A stretch of 64,000 bases of DNA, from positions 62,001-126,000 of IMG/VR virus record IMGVR_UViG_3300042350_002797, one strand, 5' to 3'. This document shows, one piece after another, positions 25,137-63,475 of the stretch. Positions within the stretch are counted from its first letter, which is position 1, and every line of letters starts with the position of its first letter. The position numbers and the translations under genes are program-made. Below the pieces are notes generated by a model. That model was not told the DNA's origin, ran no database searches, and was given only the letters and a program-made list of their open reading frames with translations.

Positions 25137-26853
25137 CTGGAGGAGCAGCAGGAGCGGCACCGCCTACTGGACTTGCTCCTGCTCCTTCAGGTGCAGCTTC
25201 TCCGCCAGGTGGAGGAGGTACTGCTGCATCAGAAGCTATGCCTAAATCACTGCTTATACCGGCTTGACTTATGCCTGCGCCGCGTAATTCTGCGCCGCTT
25301 TCTGAAGCTTGTGTTTCTGCTTTACCATTTTCTTCTCTCCATAGGCGTTCGTTTTCTGCTATTTCTTCTTCAGACAACCCTAAGAATCTTTTCATAGCAA
25401 AACGTTTGCTAATAGTCGGTATTTGAGAAAGTGTTTGATATGTTGGAGCTCGTGCAGTGTCTAATTCGCTTTGTCTAGTTGCTGCAAAATTTTGTGGAGG
25501 ATTAAATTTAAGTTCAAACAGACTGTTGTCAATATTAAGTCCTCGGTCATTTAGATAAAGTTTAAATTCTTTATCAAAAACTTCTTGCATTAGACTTTGA
25601 AGTCTTTCGCAATAGTTGTTGAATCGCAGTTCTTGAATATATGCAGTACCTACTCTGCCATCATTGTACTGGCTTTGACTATCGTCTGCTCCGGTAGGCA
25701 GGTAACTACTAGGAATACGTAATCCTCGAAATAATTTATTTGTAAAATATTTTAAATCGTCTATTTCGCCTAAATTTGTTCCGCCGGGCAAAGTTTCTAC
25801 TTTACTTCCACGACCTTCTGCGGTTTGTGGAAAGAAGTAATCTTCATTGATTGATAAAGGATTATAGGCTGAGTCAATAACATTAGTACCGCCACCAACA
25901 GCAGAAGGAATTCTTCTTTGATGTATTTCATTTTTCACTCGCTCCACAAAACTCATAGCCAAGTGACTGGGCATGTTTCCTACATCAATGTAGAATATTC
26001 TACGCTCAGGGGCACGTTGAATACGATAGATAATAATAGCATCTTCTAATAATTCTTTCTGTTTGTAAACTTTAAAAACAGATTCTAACAGACTATTGCC
26101 GAACGGATAATTGTTATCCAATCCTTCGCTTAAACTTAGATGAATTACGTGTTTTGCATCAACTGCAAGTTCGTTTTCGTTATTTTGAAATCGTGTGCCT
26201 GGACTAATTGGATAAGCACTAGCCTGGCCTCTTGCTGCTGCACCTCCTGCTATATATGCAGTACCTCTGTTATTTGTATTAACAGTGTTAGGATTAATAG
26301 TGGTTACAGTTAGCTCTTGAAAATTAGGATTTAAATCTCTAATTACATACTGTTCAGGCTTTTTGCCTTCGCTTTCGTTAACAATTATTTTGGTTAGCTT
26401 GCCTGGATCGATGTGAAACCATTTTTTAGTTTCAGGATCACGAACAAATATACTATCGCCATATTTGAATACGTTTCTAACAATTCTGAAAATTCTAGTT
26501 TCAAAATTTTGCAGTTTGCACCACTGTTGTAAGTATTCGCGTAGTACAGTAACTTCTGAATTAGTGGCTTTGGATCTAAAAAATAGTGTAAATGGTGTAT
26601 TATTTTGTTTATTAGTCTGACTGCAAAATTCTGCTAGTATGTCCAATGCGGCATTGACTTCACTGTCCATATCCATGGTATCATATTGTAGATATCGTTC
26701 TACTCTATTAGGTGCGCCAGTATATACATCTGGTAAAAAAGAACTATAATTGGTTCTCGCTGGGCCTGCTCGACCAGCAGAACTACCTACAGGACTGTAC
26801 ACAGCAGGTTGTCCGCCAACATTAACAGGTGTAAAATATTTTTTCCAGCTCAT
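25132..26853 (-). CDS. gp20: Portal protein (T4 gp20-like)
   Basis: LEDA..IYR..RAPERRIFYIDVGNMP, EDYF.P...GRGS.V.TLPGG.NLGEIDD..YF..KL.R.L..P.S motifs. Confidence 0.96.
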   Translation of the reverse strand: MSWKKYFTPVNVGGQPAVYSPVGSSAGRAGPARTNYSSFLPDVYTGAPNRVERYLQYDTMDMDSEVNAALDILAEFCSQTNKQNNTPFTLFFRSKATNSEVTVLREYLQQWCKLQNFETRIFRIVRNVFKYGDSIFVRDPETKKWFHIDPGKLTKIIVNESEGKKPEQYVIRDLNPNFQELTVTTINPNTVNTNNRGTAYIAGGAAARGQASAYPISPGTRFQNNENELAVDAKHVIHLSLSEGLDNNYPFGNSLLESVFKVYKQKELLEDAIIIYRIQRAPERRIFYIDVGNMPSHLAMSFVERVKNEIHQRRIPSAVGGGTNVIDSAYNPLSINEDYFFPQTAEGRGSKVETLPGGTNLGEIDDLKYFTNKLFRGLRIPSSYLPTGADDSQSQYNDGRVGTAYIQELRFNNYCERLQSLMQEVFDKEFKLYLNDRGLNIDNSLFELKFNPPQNFAATRQSELDTARAPTYQTLSQIPTISKRFAMKRFLGLSEEEIAENERLWREENGKAETQASESGAELRGAGISQAGISSDLGIASDAAVPPPPGGEAAPEGAGASPVGGAAPAAPPV

Positions 26854-29240
26854 TATGTTCTCTCGTATACATTACCACTACCACTTGATTTAGTGGCTCT
26901 AATTTGCTTACCGCCAATATCAACTTGTACATCAACTAGTGTAGTCATTGTAGTATTTAAGCGTTCTAGACGGTCAACGACATCGTTTAGGGATACACTA
27001 GGACCTCCTTTTGTTATCTGTTCCATAGCAGATGGGACCCCTTGTTCTAATGTTTGCTGTGCTTTTGGTATCAAACTAGATACTGAAGAAGAAAATTTAT
27101 CGCTCATAGGCATAGACAAATTTGAAAGTTTGCTACCTAAACTATTGAATGCTTCTGTTTCTTTTGGATTTAAAACTCTTTCGCCTTTATGAATAAATGC
27201 TAGCAAATCTTCTGGTTCTGCAGGTTTTCCTGTTTTACCAAATGTTCCAAATTCTCTTGTCCCTAGCCCAGTGACACCTTTGAGAATATTAAGTTGATCA
27301 ACACCTATAGTTTGAACACCGGTTATGCTTTGGATCTGATTCATGATGCCGCCGCCTTCTTCGGATTGTGTTCTTTGTTCAATCCTGTCATCTCTTCGGC
27401 GTTGCCATTCAGGTTTGTTCATTCTTTCACGCTCTTTTTGAACATCTGCTTCTTTAGCTTTTAATGATTCTATTACAATTTTGTCTAGTGCTTGCGGCCC
27501 TTTCGCAACCATTTCTTTAATTACTTGTTCTTGGCTAATGCCTCTTTCTTTAGCTTCCTTCATAATAGTTTCGTTTAGTTTAGCGTTTTTATCTAAGCTA
27601 GTTATAAATGCTATTAACTCAGGACTTTTGCCTGTCAATCCGGTTCCTTGTTCTTTACTTAATTTTAATCCTTCTTCGACTGCTTTCATTTTATCTTTTA
27701 ACTTAGGCGAAGTATCTGCTATAGTGCCTATTAATTTGCTAAACGCTGCATCAGTTGCTTTTTGTGTTTCTTCTCGAATATTGTTACTTTTACCTTTAGC
27801 AGCATCTAAATTTTGATAGAATTCATTTAATGCTCTTCCTAAAGGACTAGCTGGTGCCACTTGTTGCAAGATACCTTGTCTAATTCCGGCACTAGCATCT
27901 TTAGTTGCATTTTCAATTCCTGTTAATGCTTTAGTTGCTCCATCGCTCTTTTCTTGTTCTATTTTTGCACCTTGTCTTCTTAGCTCTAATGCCTTAGACA
28001 ATCCTTCTTCTGTTTGAAGATTTAATTTATTAGCTTTAGCAATTTCTTGAAGTTGAGTACTAAAACCTCGAGTCTGAGTCTGCATATCAACAAAATCTTT
28101 TTCTCCTTGACGTGCTAACTGTCTATTTGTATTAGATTGCTGTTGTAAAGCAGCAAGTGCAGCAGCTCTTTCAGTTAATTCTCTTGCCCTGACGTCATCA
28201 CCTTTTTTAGCTGCTTCAGCAGCTTCATATAAAGCTTTTTGTGCAGCAGGACCAATAGCATTAAATTTGCCAATCATATCCTCTGTAGGTCTGCCCATGG
28301 CAAAAATTTGCTCGGATAACATTTGGAAATCAGTGCCACCTTGCTGTGCTGCTGTCTGCATGGCATTGAATCCTTGTTGCACATTCTTGCCGCCTCTCGC
28401 AATTTCATCTGCTAGTGCAGCTTGTACTTGGCCATTTTCCTGCTGCTTTCTCATTAAATCTTCTTGTTCTTTACGACTATTACCGGTAAGTTTAGCCATT
28501 AAATCCATTTCTTTACCAAGCTTTTCAACTTGTTCAATGGCTACTTTTCTCGAATCAGCTTCATTTAATCCTTGTCGTCTTTGCTGGGTTATTGTGGTTG
28601 ATAATAAACTGTTTAAATCTTCAGTAGTAAATCCTAGACCAGTCATTCGATCAACTAATCCTGAATCGTCAAACATTGCTTGGCTAGCTTTAGTAAATTC
28701 TTTAGCTCCTTGAGCAACTCCTCCTGGTAATGTAGCAAATGCTTTGTTATTAGTTTGCATTAATTCTGTAAATTCACGCATACCTAATCTAGTACCAGCA
28801 GCGGCCATACCTAAATCTACTAGACTGTTATTAAAGTTCATACCGCCTTTGCTTAACAATCTAAAAGCATCTAAGTTTTCTTCGTAAAATTGTGAACCTT
28901 TGGCTAGTAAACCTGAAAATTTACCTATAGTGTCGCCGAATAGAAACCCTGCACCTCTTGCGTTATCCCCTACAATATTAAAGGCTTCGCTGACACGCAT
29001 ACCTCCTTTGCTCAAATGAGCAAAGGTGTCAGTAGTAGCTCCTATGCCAAATTTAGCCAGGCCTGCGAACTGATCTTTAACTCCAGTTAGAACTTGATCG
29101 AACGTCGATCCGCCGCCTCCTCCGGTACCTCCTCCACTTCCCCCAGCACCCCCTCCGCCGAAACCACTGCTGCTTCGAGAATGTTGTTTAAGAGCTTCGG
29201 CAAAGGCCTCTTTAAGATCTTGTTTTGTTAAATCGGGCAT
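26853..29240 (-). CDS. Tape-measure-like protein (795 aa)
   Basis: Ala/Gln/Lys-rich, predominantly helical; Gly-rich N-terminal linker; adjacent to the gp26-like chaperone gene. Confidence 0.65.
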   Translation of the reverse strand: MPDLTKQDLKEAFAEALKQHSRSSSGFGGGGAGGSGGGTGGGGGSTFDQVLTGVKDQFAGLAKFGIGATTDTFAHLSKGGMRVSEAFNIVGDNARGAGFLFGDTIGKFSGLLAKGSQFYEENLDAFRLLSKGGMNFNNSLVDLGMAAAGTRLGMREFTELMQTNNKAFATLPGGVAQGAKEFTKASQAMFDDSGLVDRMTGLGFTTEDLNSLLSTTITQQRRQGLNEADSRKVAIEQVEKLGKEMDLMAKLTGNSRKEQEDLMRKQQENGQVQAALADEIARGGKNVQQGFNAMQTAAQQGGTDFQMLSEQIFAMGRPTEDMIGKFNAIGPAAQKALYEAAEAAKKGDDVRARELTERAAALAALQQQSNTNRQLARQGEKDFVDMQTQTRGFSTQLQEIAKANKLNLQTEEGLSKALELRRQGAKIEQEKSDGATKALTGIENATKDASAGIRQGILQQVAPASPLGRALNEFYQNLDAAKGKSNNIREETQKATDAAFSKLIGTIADTSPKLKDKMKAVEEGLKLSKEQGTGLTGKSPELIAFITSLDKNAKLNETIMKEAKERGISQEQVIKEMVAKGPQALDKIVIESLKAKEADVQKERERMNKPEWQRRRDDRIEQRTQSEEGGGIMNQIQSITGVQTIGVDQLNILKGVTGLGTREFGTFGKTGKPAEPEDLLAFIHKGERVLNPKETEAFNSLGSKLSNLSMPMSDKFSSSVSSLIPKAQQTLEQGVPSAMEQITKGGPSVSLNDVVDRLERLNTTMTTLVDVQVDIGGKQIRATKSSGSGNVYERT

Positions 29241-29299: not shown

Positions 29300-30127
29300 A
29301 TGACCAATCCGCTACAAAAATATTTTAGACAACCTAAAGTTTACATAACTTTGCCCAGCAAAGGCATGTATTATCCCGAAGGCGCACTAACTGGCGATCC
29401 TAATAATTTTCCAATTTTAGCTATGACTGGTATGGATGAAATTATTATGAAAACTCCAGATGCACTTTTAAACGGCGAAGCCACAGTTAAAGTAATCGAA
29501 AGTTGTTGTCCTTATATTAAGGATGCATGGAGCATTCCTAATATAGATATAGATGCTATATTAGTAGGAATTCGTATTGCTACATATGGGGATATACTAA
29601 CTTTAGACAATATTTGTCCGTCTTGTAGCACAGAAAATTCCTATGAAGTAGATTTAAAAACTATTACAGACCATTTAAGTCAGTGTCAATTTAGTCATAG
29701 CATGGCTATTGATCCTATTTCAATTAATTTTAGACCGCTAACTTATCGAGAATTCACTGAAGAAAATTTAAAAAGTTTTTATCTTAGACGGCAAGTATTT
29801 CAATCATCAGAAATAGACGATCAAGAAGCTCAACAAAAAGTTCTAGAAGATGCTTATGCAAAGTTAGCTGAAATGAAAGCTGATCTAGTAATTAAAAGAA
29901 TAGACAGCGTTCAAACTATTGAAAATACAGTAGAGGATGCTAATTTTATTTCAGAATGGATTCAAAATTCTGATAGAGAAATTTTTGATTTAATCACTAA
30001 ATTTTTAGATAACAGTCAAGAGACTTGGAATATTCCAAAATTTCAAGCAAAATGTACTAACTGCGATCACGTGGATCAAATATCAATTAACTTGGATCAA
30101 TCAAGTTTTTTCGTAGCAGCCTCGTAA
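29300..30127 (+). CDS. gp26: Baseplate hub/tail assembly chaperone (T4 gp26-like)
   Basis: NPL..YFRQPK.Y..LPS.G.YY, D.D.IL..IR.A.YG, CPxC...N and C-terminal CxNC motifs. Confidence 0.85.
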   Translation: MTNPLQKYFRQPKVYITLPSKGMYYPEGALTGDPNNFPILAMTGMDEIIMKTPDALLNGEATVKVIESCCPYIKDAWSIPNIDIDAILVGIRIATYGDILTLDNICPSCSTENSYEVDLKTITDHLSQCQFSHSMAIDPISINFRPLTYREFTEENLKSFYLRRQVFQSSEIDDQEAQQKVLEDAYAKLAEMKADLVIKRIDSVQTIENTVEDANFISEWIQNSDREIFDLITKFLDNSQETWNIPKFQAKCTNCDHVDQISINLDQSSFFVAAS

Positions 30128-30345
30128 CACTGTCTAATTCTGACATCGAAACAAGAATTCAATCGCTTGAATTATATGCCAAGCAGATTAAAGAAGATAT
30201 ATTTAGAATTAGTTGGTATATGCGAGGCGGTGTAAGCAGCTATGATCTATTTCAAGTGTATAGTTCTGAAGATAGAACTATTATGAATAAAATAATCGAA
30301 GAAAATATTGAAACTACAAAGAAAGCACAGATGCCGTTGCTTTAA
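30106..30345 (+). CDS. gp51-like frame without a start codon, probably reached by a -1 frameshift from gp26 at T-TTT-TTC
   Basis: Frame open 30091-30345 (…RSSLVTLSNSDIETRIQSLELYAKQIKEDIFRISWYMRGGVSSYDLFQVYSSEDRTIMNKIIEENIETTKKAQMPLL); first ATG only at 30220; slippery heptamer at 30106-30112. Confidence 0.7.
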   Translation, partial: FFRSSLVTLSNSDIETRIQSLELYAKQIKEDIFRISWYMRGGVSSYDLFQVYSSEDRTIMNKIIEENIETTKKAQMPLL

Positions 30346-31328
30346 AGCCCTTGAGCTTGCAATGCTGCTTTCAATTCAGGATCAGTAGTATACTGACTAT
30401 ATCTTCCTTGCTCTCCGCTAGGAGCAGGTTGATCTGATTTTCGTCTAGGATCTGCAGGGGTTTGTTTTCCAGGAGCAGGTTGGCCTCCTTGGCCTTGATT
30501 AGGTTTAGCATCTGCTGGTTTACCTTTGCCCATAGCTTCATCTATAGTTTTAGAAATGCCGTCTTTTAATTTATTCCAATACTTGGCCGCTACACTTCCA
30601 GGATCATCTAAGCTCATACCTGCTACTTTATAAGCTAGTACATTTCCTATAGTTTCTCTAACATCTGGACGATTCAGATACTGTTGCACTGCAATTAAAA
30701 CAACTTCACTAGCCAGAATTCCTGCTATAGCTGCTCCGCCTGCGAATCCGCCAGTGCCTATAGTGGCTCCTAAACCTAAAGCACGAAACAACCATTTTAA
30801 TCCTACAATGCTTCTTACTATAGAAGTAATTAATCCACTGGCTGTGATCTGTACAGCTAACACACTGATCAGATTGCCCTGAGTATCAAAGTAATCTTGA
30901 TCCTTGGGTAGATTATTTGTTTCATAGTATTCATCTAATCCAGATATATTTGTCCAGTAATCGATGACCATTTCGCTATAACCAAAAATCTTTAATATCT
31001 TAAGAAATCCGCCTATACGTTTTGCTGCACTCTTCTCGCCCAATGCACGCCATGACGGGTCATTGCGATCTTTTAGATATTTTAGTAATTTCCTAACACT
31101 CTTTTTACCAACAATTTTAGTTGTTTGAGCAGTTGCTTGTCCAGGTGTCTTAGGAACTTTTTTGAATATTGCTGGACGCTTAATCATATCGTCCATAGCA
31201 GCTTTTTGCGAATTATAACTGCCTACTCTACGACCATCAGGCATTTGAACACTGAACTTTCCAGTGCTAGAATCTTTAACAACTTTAGGTCTAGTGTCAG
31301 CTTCCGCGATTATTTCAAATATATTCAT
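30342..31328 (-). CDS. Hypothetical protein (328 aa) with hydrophobic helices; candidate internal/ejection protein
   Basis: Own late promoter; N-terminal MNIFEIIAE; central hydrophobic Gly/Ala/Ile segments; low-complexity Pro/Gln tail. Confidence 0.6.
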   Translation of the reverse strand: MNIFEIIAEADTRPKVVKDSSTGKFSVQMPDGRRVGSYNSQKAAMDDMIKRPAIFKKVPKTPGQATAQTTKIVGKKSVRKLLKYLKDRNDPSWRALGEKSAAKRIGGFLKILKIFGYSEMVIDYWTNISGLDEYYETNNLPKDQDYFDTQGNLISVLAVQITASGLITSIVRSIVGLKWLFRALGLGATIGTGGFAGGAAIAGILASEVVLIAVQQYLNRPDVRETIGNVLAYKVAGMSLDDPGSVAAKYWNKLKDGISKTIDEAMGKGKPADAKPNQGQGGQPAPGKQTPADPRRKSDQPAPSGEQGRYSQYTTDPELKAALQAQGL

Positions 31329-31357: not shown

Positions 31358-31795
31358 AAAGATGAACTACGTTCATCTGTTCTTCGCTTACGCTCGAACA
31401 TATTGTTTTTCTTTAAATGCGAAGCACTTAAGATATTATCTAGATTGTTCAGTCATACTTAGCCCGTTGCCGGGCTAAAAAATAACATTATCTGAGTTGC
31501 ACAATATCATTTAGCATTACAGCATTACAGAGGCGGTCGTCCGGTACCTCGAGCTGCGTCTTTATACGACGGCGGCATACAAATATATGCTAACATACTT
31601 GTATACGTGCAGGTTTTCCCTGCTCATTTCGCCTTTTTATCCTTTTCAAACAATCAAATCGCAGGTCTTAGTAGCGATCTTCATCCCGAAGGGTAGTGAT
31701 TGAGCACTCTTAACGGCAAGAGATTTCCATCCCTGTGACCCGAGGTCCAGGTATCCGGGCACACGAAATTAGCCTGTGCCAGCTGTTAACCGTTT
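31358..31795 (-). ncRNA. Candidate large structured non-coding RNA (about 440 nt), family unassigned
   Basis: ORF-free gap in a gene-dense genome with more than 10 stems, GNRA loops (GGAA, GCAA, GUAA), a C(UUCG)G loop and G-U pairs that form only on the minus strand. Confidence 0.75.
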
Positions 31796-32226
31796 AATTG
31801 TTTGCCTTTGATGTGAGAGCCATGGACACGAACACTGATCTGACCATTATAGTAGCTGTCAGATTCTAGTACTCGCCGTGTGAATTGTTCTCTTGCCTCT
31901 ATGTAACTGCACTCTGCTTTGCTTTTGCAGTAGAACAGTATCTCTCTGTGAAATTTGTCTGTGCCTAATTGTGCAACATCTTTGTTAAGTTCGTCGTTGC
32001 TGCCGTAGTATGTTTGCCAGTCCGAGTCTATTTTTGATTTAATACGTTTCTTTTTCTTTGTGCCGTTTTTTAGTTTTACTATTTTATATGTGGTTTTTGA
32101 AAATTTTGCCAGTTTTTTGCCTATATACATTCGTCCGTTAACAGTATTGGTTATACAGTATACAAATCCAATACAATCTTCAGGAAGTTCCGTTATTAGT
32201 TGACTCTGGTGGTACCACGACATCAA
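31786..32226 (-). CDS. Minimal GIY-YIG endonuclease (146 aa)
   Basis: GFVYCITN..NGRMYIGKK, YYGS, YIEAREQ (catalytic Glu) and YYNG (Asn) motifs; no NUMOD or HTH tail. Confidence 0.85.
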   Translation of the reverse strand: MMSWYHQSQLITELPEDCIGFVYCITNTVNGRMYIGKKLAKFSKTTYKIVKLKNGTKKKKRIKSKIDSDWQTYYGSNDELNKDVAQLGTDKFHREILFYCKSKAECSYIEAREQFTRRVLESDSYYNGQISVRVHGSHIKGKQLNG

Positions 32227-61358: not shown

Positions 61359-63475
61359 TGAGTTATACAATTAATTTTACAGATACTCCTAATAATCCTG
61401 GCGGTATAACAGTTGAAGATCAAAGTCTAAACCAAGAAAAAAGTATAAGTTTTATAGGAAAAAATTATACAGGGTATGCTAAAGTTATTGCAGAAAGTTT
61501 TTTACATCTGCTAGAAAATTTTGCTAAATCAGAAGCACCTAATAATCCTGTTGTAGGTCAATTATGGTACGATACTGACTCTAATAACGATCCATCACAG
61601 CCTCAACTATTAGTTTATGACGGTACAAATTGGCAACCTGCTGGAACAGTAAAAAGAAGATCCAGTCAACCCTTAGCATCTGAAAGTGTTATTGGTGATT
61701 TATGGGTAGACACTGCTAATCAACAGTTATATTTGTGGTCTGGATCTAGTTGGATTTTAATCGGTCCTGAATTTAGTGCAGGAACAGTTACAGGTCCTAA
61801 AGTTGAGTCGCTAATAGACACATTGACCATTGAAAGATTTGTAATAAGTCTATATGTCAGCGACGAAAGAATAGCAATTATAAGTTCTCAAGAATTTACT
61901 CCAAAACTATCAATAGAAGGATTTCCTAAAATTAAGAAAGGTATTAATTTAAGAGATACTAATGATAGCGGAGTTACTAATTTAAACAACAGCACTTTTA
62001 GATTTGTTGGATCTGCTACTAATAGTGAAAAATTAGGCGGCATTGATGCAAGTAATTTTGTTAGAAACGATATTAATAGTACTACGAACGGTAGTTTTAG
62101 CATTAGAAATAATGCTGGATTAATTTTAGGTTCAGATTTATCTGTAAGTCTGTCAAATACTTCAACCGGCGCCACTGTTTTATACAATAAAACTGAGGGA
62201 TCCAGCATCTTTATAAGAACTAATCAAGATGGTGCAGCTCAAGATGTTATCACAGTTAGCGGAACTAATGTAGGTATTAATAAAACAAATCCAGTGTATG
62301 AATTAGATATCAATGGCACATTACGTACTAGTGATAATCTGTTTGTTAATGGTACAAATAATGCAGTAGATTTAAATACTGGATCAATCAGAACTGCTGG
62401 CGGATTAAGCGTACAAAAAAGTATTCATGTTGGTCAAGGAATTAAAGTTACTGGTAATATTGTTAGCAATAATATTATTCCAGAAACAACTGCTGTATAT
62501 GATTTAGGCACAGAAGATACTACTTTTAGAAATATATATGCAACAAAAGTTGTTTCATCTAACTTTGAAGGTTCTTTTTCAGGACAATTAATCGGTTCAG
62601 TAACAGGTAGTGCCAGTCGATTAGCAAGCGCCACTAATTTTAGACTAGTAGGTGAAGTAACTAGTAATACTGTAAGTTTTAATGGATTACAACCTAGTGG
62701 ATTAGCAGAATTTACAGCCACAGTTAGTGCAGATTTTATTGGAAATAAAACACTTGTAAGTTCAGTCAATGACGATGATTTATTATTAATACAACGACCA
62801 GCAACAGGTTTACAAAAAGTAACTACTGCGGCATTCTTTTCAAGAGCAGGCGTATTACCAATTGGATCGTTAATGCCGTTTGCTGGTACAGTTGCTCCGA
62901 ATGGATTCGTATTGTGTGACGGAAGCGAATACTTAATCAGTGAATATACAGAGTTATGGCAAATTATTGGATATACTTATAAACCACTAGGAGCATTACA
63001 AGGATTGAATACATTCGCTGTGCCTGATTTAAGGGGAAGATTTCCTTTAGGTTTAGATAATATGTTTAGTAATGTTAAAGTTCCTAAGAATGATGGGTCA
63101 GGAGATCTAATTTATACAATTGGAACAAGTGCATCGAGAGTTAATGCTTCTGCTGCAAATAACATAGGTTCAGGAAGCGGAACTCAAGATACTCAGTTGC
63201 AAATTAGTCAGTTACCAGAACATACACACGATATGAGGGGACTAACATCTACAGGAGAAAAAGGCCAGCAGTACTATGCAATTAGAAATAGCTCTGATCC
63301 TGCAGGAGATGTTAATACTGTAAGCCATACTACAAAAGGTCCGTCGCTGCCAAATGAAGGGCAATTTTTGCCTAACAGCGGTGGTGTCAATAACGCACTT
63401 TTAGGTGAAGCAGTTTCATTAATGAATCCTTATATAAGTTTAAATTATATAATCTATACCGGAAAGTTTATCTAA
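61358..63475 (+). CDS. Tail fibre with C-terminal phage tail-collar domain (gp12-like)
   Basis: PIGSLMPFAG..AP.GF.LCDG...Y.EL...IG...F.VPDLRGRFPLG collar motif and terminal NPY..LNYII. Confidence 0.85.
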   Translation: MSYTINFTDTPNNPGGITVEDQSLNQEKSISFIGKNYTGYAKVIAESFLHLLENFAKSEAPNNPVVGQLWYDTDSNNDPSQPQLLVYDGTNWQPAGTVKRRSSQPLASESVIGDLWVDTANQQLYLWSGSSWILIGPEFSAGTVTGPKVESLIDTLTIERFVISLYVSDERIAIISSQEFTPKLSIEGFPKIKKGINLRDTNDSGVTNLNNSTFRFVGSATNSEKLGGIDASNFVRNDINSTTNGSFSIRNNAGLILGSDLSVSLSNTSTGATVLYNKTEGSSIFIRTNQDGAAQDVITVSGTNVGINKTNPVYELDINGTLRTSDNLFVNGTNNAVDLNTGSIRTAGGLSVQKSIHVGQGIKVTGNIVSNNIIPETTAVYDLGTEDTTFRNIYATKVVSSNFEGSFSGQLIGSVTGSASRLASATNFRLVGEVTSNTVSFNGLQPSGLAEFTATVSADFIGNKTLVSSVNDDDLLLIQRPATGLQKVTTAAFFSRAGVLPIGSLMPFAGTVAPNGFVLCDGSEYLISEYTELWQIIGYTYKPLGALQGLNTFAVPDLRGRFPLGLDNMFSNVKVPKNDGSGDLIYTIGTSASRVNASAANNIGSGSGTQDTQLQISQLPEHTHDMRGLTSTGEKGQQYYAIRNSSDPAGDVNTVSHTTKGPSLPNEGQFLPNSGGVNNALLGEAVSLMNPYISLNYIIYTGKFI

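Follow-up and report, generated by a model that had tools for sequence, protein, structure and literature searches.

How does a lake-water jumbo phage that carries a single gene of the T4 gp26/gp51 family supply the two proteins, one short and one long, that related phages encode as two separate genes? The locus examined here lies in a window of 64,000 nucleotides (positions 62,001 to 126,000 of IMG/VR record IMGVR_UViG_3300042350_002797). The initial annotation noted a candidate slippery heptamer just before the stop codon of this gene and proposed a -1 programmed ribosomal frameshift into a "gp51-like" frame, comparable to lambda G/GT. Here we ask whether the sequence features are real, whether they are conserved, and how far the comparison with known systems can be taken. 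In this phage and in every relative examined, a ribosome slipping back by one base appears to produce a short and a long version of the tail-hub assembly protein.

The reading frames and their surroundings

The sequence reads ...TCA AGT TTT TTC GTA GCA GCC TCG TAA in the frame of the upstream gene, which places an in-phase X_XXY_YYZ heptamer four codons before the stop. The features of the locus are as follows.

29300..30127 (+): frame 0 ORF, 275 aa, the short product; the only gp26/gp51-family gene (PF12322 T4_baseplate, phrog_150 "baseplate hub") in the 364,554-bp genome, with two Cys pairs (C106/C109 and C252/C255) and a C-terminal FF motif.
30106..30112 (+): slippery heptamer T_TTT_TTC, in phase (AGT TTT TTC); its last base, C, is the first base of the conserved Arg codon (CGT) of the -1 frame.
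30125..30127 (+): frame 0 stop codon, 4 codons after the heptamer; in relatives it lies 1-11 codons after, and the intervening frame 0 residues are not conserved.
30112..30345 (+): -1 frame extension of 77 codons (RSSLVTLSNSDIETR...KKAQMPLL) plus a TAA stop at 30343-30345, with a conserved helical C-terminal domain (R..L....S.(E/D)IE...ISWYMRGG...EDR...NIE.TKK..PLL); its stop overlaps the stop of the convergent 328-aa gene.
29300..30345 (+): inferred trans-frame long product of 348 aa (residues 1-271 from frame 0, then 77 from frame -1), with the junction ...LDQSSFF/RSSLVTL...
30113..30190 (+): the stretch in which most relatives have a putative stimulatory stem-loop; the window and its nearest relatives show no significant structure here.
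26853..29240 (-): divergent neighbor of 795 aa, a probable tail tape-measure protein (TMP), given as context and not part of the recoding site.

The observation made in the initial annotation is correct: the heptamer, the 77-codon open frame, the absence of an early start and the product sizes of 275 and about 348 aa are all as described. The first ATG, GTG or TTG of the -1 frame is the ATG at 30220. Four independent lake-metagenome assemblies are identical over 29800-30450, with 0 mismatches and 0 gaps, and four IMG/VR contigs from other samples are also identical at the site. The T6 run is therefore not an assembly error. The family assignment rests on a PF12322 match at 1.6e-16 (61.1 bits against a curated cut-off of 24.5) and a phrog_150 match at 2.9e-19. 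The four Cys residues, together with F270 and F271, are invariant in 62 homologues.

The statement that no strong hairpin is evident also holds for the window, with a z-score of -0.70 for the downstream 100 nt and -0.24 for the 78 nt after the heptamer. A search of Rfam returned no known frameshift element, scans for promoters and terminators were at chance level, and no ribosome binding site stands out. The placement next to a tape-measure gene is plausible but only indirectly supported. The 795-aa neighbor has no Pfam or PHROG hit, BLASTP against T4 gp29 found nothing significant, and no source names its homologues. However its nearest named clusters by language-model features are tape-measure families (0.90-0.92) and its homologues vary from 737 to 1116 aa.

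Conservation of the heptamer and of the -1 frame

Conservation of the slippery site and of the -1 frame in homologues had been named at the outset as one way to check the proposal, a missing heptamer being one outcome that would count against it. We examined 101 loci representing 81 distinct genes at 27-100% identity to the window's protein, including PA5oct, Atu_ph07, Phosso, XacN1, Xoo-sp13, Serratia BF, E. coli BF17 and the Rak2/121Q group. Further searches for related loci seeded with the XacN1, BF17 and PA5oct proteins added few loci, and an alignment including T4 was too diverse to scan with. An in-phase T_TTT_TTY is present in 101/101 loci. As the sequences are related, these counts do not represent independent events.

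The constraint is at the nucleotide level and exceeds what the encoded peptide and codon usage explain. In the bodies of the same genes Phe is encoded 80% by TTT and 20% by TTC, and NAY/AGY codons end in T 71% of the time. At the site, by contrast, the preceding codon ends in T in 81/81 genes, the first Phe is TTT in 81/81 and the second Phe is the minor codon TTC in 79/81. Elsewhere in these genes only 8 of 42 FF dipeptides form an in-phase slippery heptamer. Part of the conservation is nevertheless expected without recoding, since FF is itself a conserved peptide motif and these genomes are T-rich. C7-G8 of the heptamer region is invariant and forms the Arg codon that natural in-frame long forms also have after the Phe (F-R), so that reading in the -1 frame must start at the heptamer. 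Three loci (L043, L048 and L050 in our set) have a second in-phase heptamer, A_AAA_AAN, two codons later. It is an addition and not a replacement, since these loci keep T_TTT_TTC.

The -1 frame is 71-79 codons long in every locus, and its substitutions are concentrated at third positions (codon-position variability 0.40/0.25/0.57), as in coding sequence. A profile of the extension finds 422 proteins at E<=1e-3. About 20 of the top 150 hits are proteins of 319-351 aa that carry the extension in frame at the C-terminus and are colinear with the long product across the junction (e.g. ...DLDWSSSFRNKILTQTPEE...). An AlphaFold model of one of these is predicted to fold as a single unit (pLDDT 95, pTM 0.91), with the extension predicted as helices (pLDDT 88-97).

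In all 5 of the contigs with such a long gene and with upstream sequence (L107, L108, L110, L111 and L112, from uncultured T4-like phages), the long gene is preceded by a tandem short paralogue that ends just after the FF position. The long genes carry the same C-terminal domain (hmmsearch 2e-26 to 6e-27), and the same two end products result. L111 and L112 share the synteny of the window, namely a portal, a protein of about 770 aa, then the divergent PF12322 genes. In the short paralogues the heptamer is slippery-like in only 2 of 5, one of which, although it needs no frameshift, still has TCT TTT TTC. There is one family member per genome in the window phage, Atu_ph07, PA5oct, XacN1 and Serratia BF, and two in T4.

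A downstream RNA structure is found in most relatives. Of 62 distinct downstream sequences, 41 have z<-2 (mean z -2.5), with stem-loops starting 5-8 nt after the heptamer. RNAalifold on all 62 sequences gave no consensus because subclades pair the same 5′ arm with different 3′ arms. The structure was therefore assessed per sequence and on the main subclass, where a 13-bp stem is 87% paired, against 20-51% when the partner is slid, and its covariation score was reached by 0/500 shuffles. The window itself has no significant downstream structure, so the efficiency of the shift there may be low; a stimulatory element for its own site is neither demonstrated nor excluded by these data.

Interpretation and alternative explanations

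We propose that the single gp26/gp51-family gene is decoded in two ways. In this view most ribosomes read frame 0 through AGT TTT TTC and stop four codons later, giving the 275-aa short form. A fraction would slip back one base on T_TTT_TTC, with the P-site and A-site tRNA-Phe re-pairing on UUU UUU, and continue from CGT (Arg) for 77 codons, giving a 348-aa long form with an extra helical C-terminal domain. In most relatives the stem-loop probably stimulates the slip, whereas the window's own subclade may rely on the heptamer alone, possibly helped by the nearby frame 0 stop, which is speculation.

Sequence comparison establishes that the slippery site, the reading frame and the extension are conserved, that the long form exists as one polypeptide in relatives, and that lineages encoding the long form as a gene of its own also keep a separate short-form gene and lose the constraint on the heptamer. 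That the shift is ribosomal rather than transcriptional, that both forms are needed in a set ratio for assembly of the baseplate hub/tape-measure complex, and that the extension supplies the gp51-like activity are inferences. The second of these follows from T4, where gp26 and gp51 are hub-assembly proteins and gp51 is required but absent from the virion (PMC3004832). We have no direct evidence of the trans-frame protein or of the efficiency of the shift, as no RNA run was listed for this stretch and no proteomic data were available. On the comparative evidence the -1 frameshift is strongly supported, and we assign this reading a probability of roughly 0.85.

The best surviving alternative, although unlikely, is transcriptional slippage, in which RNA polymerase adds one extra U in the T6 run and generates an mRNA subpopulation encoding an identical long protein (..SFFR..). 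The site is a homopolymer of 6 T, or 7 T in XacN1 and Xoo-sp13, and without RNA data this mechanism is not excluded. However six T is short compared with the runs at which slippage is productive, as in the dnaX and IS cases, a point that was not tested here. Moreover the conserved RNA structure lies downstream with a 5-8 nt spacer, an arrangement typical of ribosomal -1 frameshifting, and the second heptamer added in three loci makes sense for ribosomes.

Independent initiation of the second frame had also been named beforehand as an outcome that would overturn the proposal. Under this reading, still less likely than slippage, the downstream frame is a separate small gene of about 40-75 aa, translated by its own initiation or by termination-reinitiation at the gp26 stop. 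Six of the seven intact named records that we opened annotate a separate small ORF, and in Atu_ph07, Phosso, BF17 and Serratia BF an ATG of the -1 frame overlaps the frame 0 stop (ATGA/TAATG), so that a separately initiated small protein is conceivable there. In the window clade, however, the first start codon lies 36 codons into the conserved domain, inside the WYMRGG motif. The Arg codon that straddles the heptamer is conserved, gene callers place the start at many different positions (hits of 41-98 aa), and natural homologues carry the domain fused in frame to the PF12322 body.

A sequencing error, a decaying gene or a chance open frame, suggested only by the error-prone homopolymer and the lack of structure in the window, is refuted as far as sequence comparison can show by the identical assemblies from four studies, the same architecture in 81 distinct genes including isolated and completely sequenced phages, the coding signature of the -1 frame, and the uniform length of the top 120 homologues (all 270-294 aa).

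Relation to T4 gp26/gp51, lambda G/GT and dnaX

The interpretation given in the initial annotation is partly supported: the frameshift itself is strongly supported by comparison, but two parts of it go beyond the evidence. The first is the description of the extension as gp51-like. T4 gp26 (baseplate hub, 208 aa) and gp51 (hub assembly protein, 249 aa) belong to the same Pfam and PHROG family as the window's gene. The short form ends at the same profile position as gp26, at the FF motif (gp26 ends ...KEFFELL), and gp51 extends about 45 residues further, as the long form does. The gp51 tail is shorter than the extension, and similarity of the tails is weak. Full-length profiles align end to end with an E of 4e-4, whereas hhalign of the tails alone gives P 0.006-0.035, against 0.2-0.3 for reversed controls. 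An HMM of the extension does not find T4 gp51, and phrog_634 (gp51 C-terminal part) finds nothing in the window's genome. PF28602, which is assigned to gp51 homologues, was not among the Pfam profiles searched. Homology of the two tails is thus neither secured nor ruled out by these comparisons. In a quick ML tree, the only one completed, T4 gp26 and the gp51 proteins form one clade (SH-aLRT 99) outside all jumbo-phage genes, although the gp26 branch is long. The T4 pair therefore looks like a separate duplication, and the long product is read as a functional counterpart of gp51 rather than its orthologue. T4 also differs in using two divergently transcribed genes and no frameshift, with GAG TTC TTT at the motif of gp26, and T4 gene 26 has an internal-start product, 26′, which has no counterpart here.

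The second is the match to lambda G/GT, which holds for expression logic only. As in lambda gpG/gpGT and the conserved tail-assembly-chaperone frameshift of long-tailed phages (Xu, Hendrix & Duda 2004), a -1 slip on a heptamer near the end of a tail-morphogenesis gene would yield an abundant short form and a rarer long form with a shared N-terminus and an added C-terminal domain. The gene lies beside the probable tape-measure gene, and the architecture is conserved while the sequence diverges. However the protein is a PF12322 member of about 275 aa with two Cys pairs, against chaperones of about 100-140 aa, and no sequence or fold similarity to known tail assembly chaperones or to any solved structure was found. 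Pfam and PHROG searches gave only PF12322 and phrog_150, Foldseek against Swiss-Prot AFDB and PDB and VIA-align against PDB representatives gave no meaningful match, and BFVD hits are all gp26/gp51-family proteins. The gene is on the opposite strand to the TMP-like gene, with the portal, the TMP-like gene and an unknown convergent gene as neighbors, rather than between the tube and TMP genes. Binding to the TMP and absence from the mature virion were not measured, and a complex prediction of TMP-like residues 96-795 with the short form gave no verdict, which is evidence neither way. In the PA5oct record the neighbor carries an ESI-MS/MS virion note and the gp26 homologue does not, a weak hint only.

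In E. coli dnaX (tau/gamma), a bacterial-type X_XXY_YYZ heptamer with a downstream stem-loop, present here in relatives, gives two products of one gene in a set ratio, as is inferred here. In dnaX the shifted frame stops almost at once and the frameshift product is the shorter one, whereas here the shifted frame adds a 77-residue domain. No upstream Shine-Dalgarno-like stimulator was identified here.

Programmed frameshifting in tail assembly genes is a hallmark of long-tailed phages, to which the T4 superfamily has been, to our knowledge, the conspicuous exception. The roles of T4 gp26 and gp51 in hub assembly remain poorly defined (PMC3004832). A frameshift that makes gp26-like and gp51-like forms from one gene gives a concrete model of two forms with a shared body and an extension with a separate task, and cultivable systems exist (PA5oct, Atu_ph07, 121Q/PBECO4, Serratia BF). 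A broader possibility, which agrees with the initial annotation's suggestion of G/GT analogues and which we regard as tentative and somewhat less likely than not, is that the gp26/gp51 family is the T4-superfamily counterpart of the G/GT chaperones, with the two forms cooperating on the tape measure and hub. The need for both would then have been met at least three ways: by -1 frameshifting in Rak2-, PA5oct-, Atu_ph07- and lake-type jumbo phages, by tandem duplication in other uncultured T4-like phages, and by an independent duplication in T4 itself. This would explain why no G/GT-type frameshift was ever found in T4, and what the "catalytic" gp51 does.

No public record searched describes this site, and a literature search, which did not extend to subscription journals, found no paper describing a frameshift in gp26/gp51-family genes. 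In the seven intact public records inspected (in the eighth, CMSTMSU, the gene is split) the long product is missing, and the extension is either called as a spurious small "hypothetical protein" with an arbitrary start or not called at all. The protein databases hold hundreds of such fragments.

The gp26/gp51-family gene and its -1 frame

The window belongs to a 364,554-bp IMG/VR virus record rated complete. At least 18 lake-water metagenomes contain the same sequence, with the phage sequence present at 100 % of sampled words in 18 runs from 2018-2025 across many studies. This is a widespread and persistent freshwater jumbo phage with no cultured host. Contigs from four independent studies are identical over 29800-30450. 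The elements of the locus are the following:

29300..30127 (+): ORF of 275 aa, ending AGT TTT TTC GTA GCA GCC TCG TAA.
30106-30112: T_TTT_TTC heptamer, in the X_XXY_YYZ phase of this ORF.
30220: first ATG/GTG/TTG of the -1 frame, which is open for 77 codons from the last base of the heptamer.
30343-30345: TAA stop of the -1 frame.
30342..31328 (-): convergent gene of 328 aa, of unknown function, with no Pfam or PHROG hit.
31786-32226 (-): ORF of 146 aa with a GIY...YIG-like N-terminus (..CIGFVYCITNTVNGRMYIGKK..).

The predicted products are 275 and 348 aa. Everything that the initial annotation had described at this site, namely the in-phase heptamer and an open -1 frame of 77 codons without an ATG before 30220, is present in the sequence. 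The stop codon of the extension overlaps by two bases the stop of the convergent gene, leaving no intergenic space.

The 275-aa protein matches Pfam PF12322 'T4_baseplate' (61 bits against a cut-off of 24.5) and phrog_150 'baseplate hub', two families to which both T4 gp26 (208 aa) and gp51 (249 aa) belong. On the 282 positions of the phrog_150 profile, the window's protein covers positions 3-234, T4 gp26 covers 14-235 and T4 gp51 covers 13-280. Thus, the short form ends where gp26 ends, at a conserved FF motif (T4 gp26 ends ...KEFFELL), and gp51 runs about 45 positions further. The genome has only one member of the family, as do Atu_ph07, PA5oct, XacN1 and Serratia BF, whereas T4 has two. On the other strand lies a neighboring 795-aa protein without Pfam or PHROG hit, whose nearest named clusters by language-model features are tape-measure families (0.90-0.92) and whose homologues vary widely in length; a T4-type portal gene follows it. 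Further downstream of the gp26 gene lie gp46/gp47-like genes, and the 146-aa ORF located between the hub gene region and these genes suggests a small homing-endonuclease-like gene. L112, one of the relative contigs, has a SegE_GIY-YIG gene in the corresponding region.

Conservation of the slippery site and coding signature of the -1 frame

Conservation of the heptamer and of the -1 frame in homologues had been proposed at the outset as one check of the candidate. A tblastn search with the 77-residue extension found the -1 frame immediately after the gp26 homologue of Atu_ph07 and Phosso, both of which have CAT TTT TTC and a conserved (S/C)WYMRGG motif. We then examined 101 loci (81 distinct genes, 27-100 % identical to the window's protein) from seven named jumbo phages and from IMG/VR contigs. 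Every one of them has an in-phase T_TTT_TTC (T_TTT_TTT in XacN1 and Xoo-sp13) at the FF motif, a 0-frame stop 1-11 codons later and a -1 frame of 71-79 codons. In one further record, Escherichia phage CMSTMSU (L008, an UNVERIFIED_ORG record), the gp26 homologue is split into two annotated ORFs (1492-2091 and 2067-2348) and is matched by tblastn in two pieces, which is probably due to a sequencing frameshift inside the gene body, unrelated to the programmed site.

Because FF is itself conserved, we asked whether the nucleotides are constrained beyond the peptide. In the bodies of the same genes Phe is encoded by TTT in 80 % and by TTC in 20 % of cases, and NAY/AGY codons end in T 71 % of the time. 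At the site, however, the preceding codon ends in T in 81/81 genes, the first Phe is TTT in 81/81 and the second Phe is the minor codon TTC in 79/81. That C, with the invariant G after it, forms the Arg codon that opens the -1 reading. Elsewhere in these genes only 8 of 42 FF dipeptides form a slippery in-phase heptamer. These counts come from related sequences and are not independent events, although third positions are close to saturated across the set (0.57 differences per site). Three relatives (loci L043, L048 and L050) carry a second in-phase heptamer (A_AAA_AAA, A_AAA_AAG and A_AAA_AAT) two codons after T_TTT_TTC, about 6 nt downstream, giving tandem slip sites into the same -1 frame.

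The -1 frame encodes protein and is part of the same polypeptide. Pairwise differences in the extension are 0.40, 0.25 and 0.57 per site at its codon positions 1, 2 and 3. A profile built from 35 extensions and searched against 1.84 billion representative proteins gave 422 hits at E<=1e-3 and 142 at E<=1e-10. Most of these are fragments of 41-98 aa whose called starts fall at many different places in the domain, the signature of a frame that gene callers cannot start properly. Twenty of the top 150 hits are proteins of 319-351 aa carrying the domain at the extreme C-terminus in a single frame, with junctions such as ...DLDWSSSFRNKILTQTPEE... that are colinear with the ...NLDQSSFFRSSLVTLSNSD... 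predicted for the window. An AlphaFold2 model of one of these long proteins (P0246) has pLDDT 95 and pTM 0.91, and in this model the extension forms helices 266-341.

Two-gene relatives, RNA structure and relation to T4 and lambda

Some relatives offer a natural control. We retrieved the encoding contigs for six of these long forms and, in all five with upstream sequence, the long gene is directly preceded by a second PF12322 gene of 276-329 aa that ends a few residues after the FF position and has no extension domain. Two of the contigs, L111 and L112, have the gene order of the window: T4-type portal, then a ~770-aa protein on one strand, the PF12322 genes on the other, and a gp46-like gene beyond (plus gp47-like in L111). 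In L112 (1-2709, minus strand) the portal gene is 963+ aa and carries Intein_splicing and (faint) HNH hits between two Portal_T4 segments, suggesting an intein inside the portal protein. Thus, the same locus encodes the short and long forms either as two genes or as one gene with the slippery site. In the short paralogues the motif reads TCT TTT TTC, AAT TTT TTA, GAC TTC TTT, GAT TAT ATC and AAT TTC TTT, and T4 gp26 has GAG TTC TTT. In the two-gene contig L107 (1687-1704) the short paralogue still ends TCT TTT TTC AAT GAC TAA, an in-phase slippery heptamer whose -1 frame stops after one codon, while contig L108 has AAT TTT TTA; these may be relics of a frameshifting ancestor, or simply FF codon usage. 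The heptamer is invariant only where a frameshift is needed to reach the extension.

The downstream sequence of the window folds no better than shuffles, with z -0.70 for 100 nt and -0.24 for 78 nt, and its closest relatives behave the same way. Across 62 distinct sequences, however, the mean z is -2.5, with 41 sequences at z<-2 and 25 at z<-3, and the dominant helix usually starts 5-8 nt after the heptamer. Subclades pair the same 5′ arm with different 3′ arms, which is why RNAalifold returned no consensus on the whole set. In the largest subclass (24 sequences) a 13-bp stem (columns 13-25 with 50-62) is paired in 87 % of cells, against 20-51 % when the partner is slid by 1-3 columns. Four pairs change on both sides, for example UA 12, AU 4, CG 2, UG 2 and GC 1 at one pair, and the covariation score is reached by 0 of 500 shuffles. 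The arms encode conserved residues, so part of the pairing is inherited, but the compensatory changes are not. No Rfam family matches the region.

Profiles of full-length trans-frame products and of T4-like gp51 align from near the N-terminus to the last residues of both at E 4e-4, placing FFR..L...(E/D)EI on iFKLLLnPDEv and ..EDR......I.ENIE on MiPiER...SLIEKD. The extension alone against the gp51 tail gives P 0.006 for the window clade and 0.008 for the Rak2-like clade, both aligning at the same colinear position, whereas reversed controls give 0.2-0.3. An HMM of the extension does not detect T4 gp51, and these weak signals leave homology of the tails undecided. T4-like gp51 proteins (P0122-P0213 among the homologues) carry a second precomputed Pfam family, PF28602, besides PF12322, which the window-type proteins do not; PF28602 was not compared with the -1 extension. 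A quick ML tree puts T4 gp26 with the gp51 proteins (SH-aLRT 99), outside all jumbo-phage genes, and nests four of the five short paralogues among frameshift-type genes. This tree rests on the quick search only, with a midpoint root and a long gp26 branch. In our reading the long form occupies the place of gp51 functionally and its tail may be anciently homologous, while the T4 pair and the tandem pairs are probably separate duplications.

The initial annotation had further matched the site to the lambda G/GT tail-assembly-chaperone frameshift, and this interpretation is supported in part. The expression logic is the same and the gene sits beside the probable tape measure, but membership is not supported: the gene is not between the tube and tape-measure genes and is on the other strand, there is no Pfam or PHROG similarity to chaperone families, and two structural search methods found no match in the PDB. 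Predicted-structure matches are all gp26/gp51-family 'baseplate hub' proteins. In the literature gp26 and gp51 are listed as hub-assembly chaperones, and gp51 is required for baseplate assembly but absent from the particle (PMC3004832). This fits a chaperone role but does not show tape-measure binding, for which a complex prediction of the short form with the TMP-like protein gave no verdict either way.

Mechanism and annotation in public records

The best explanation, to which we give a probability of about 0.85, is ribosomal -1 slippage on U_UUU_UUC, with both tRNA-Phe re-pairing and reading resuming at CGN (Arg), stimulated in most lineages by the downstream stem. The conserved site, the coding -1 frame and the in-frame long forms are observed by comparison, whereas the ribosomal slip itself is inferred. 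Transcriptional insertion of one U would give the same protein and, in the absence of RNA data, is not excluded, but the short run and the downstream position of the structure argue against it and we consider it unlikely. Independent initiation of the second frame, named beforehand as an outcome that would overturn the candidate, is less likely still: a separately initiated small protein is contradicted by the absence of a start codon in the window clade, the conserved junction codon and the natural fusions, although in four named phages an ATG does overlap the 0-frame stop. Artefact or decay is excluded, as far as sequence comparison shows, by the breadth of conservation.

What is new is the familiar tail-gene frameshift logic in an unrelated protein family; to our knowledge no such frameshift had been reported in this phage superfamily. 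Papers on PA5oct, Atu_ph07, XacN1, CBB, the Eneladusvirus phages and RsoM2USA do not mention a frameshift, and other full-text searches found nothing, although most subscription journals were not covered and a prior description is therefore not ruled out. Of the seven intact public records inspected (an eighth, CMSTMSU, has the gene split in two), none annotates a joined CDS, and the extension is called as a small hypothetical protein with varying starts or, in PA5oct, not at all.
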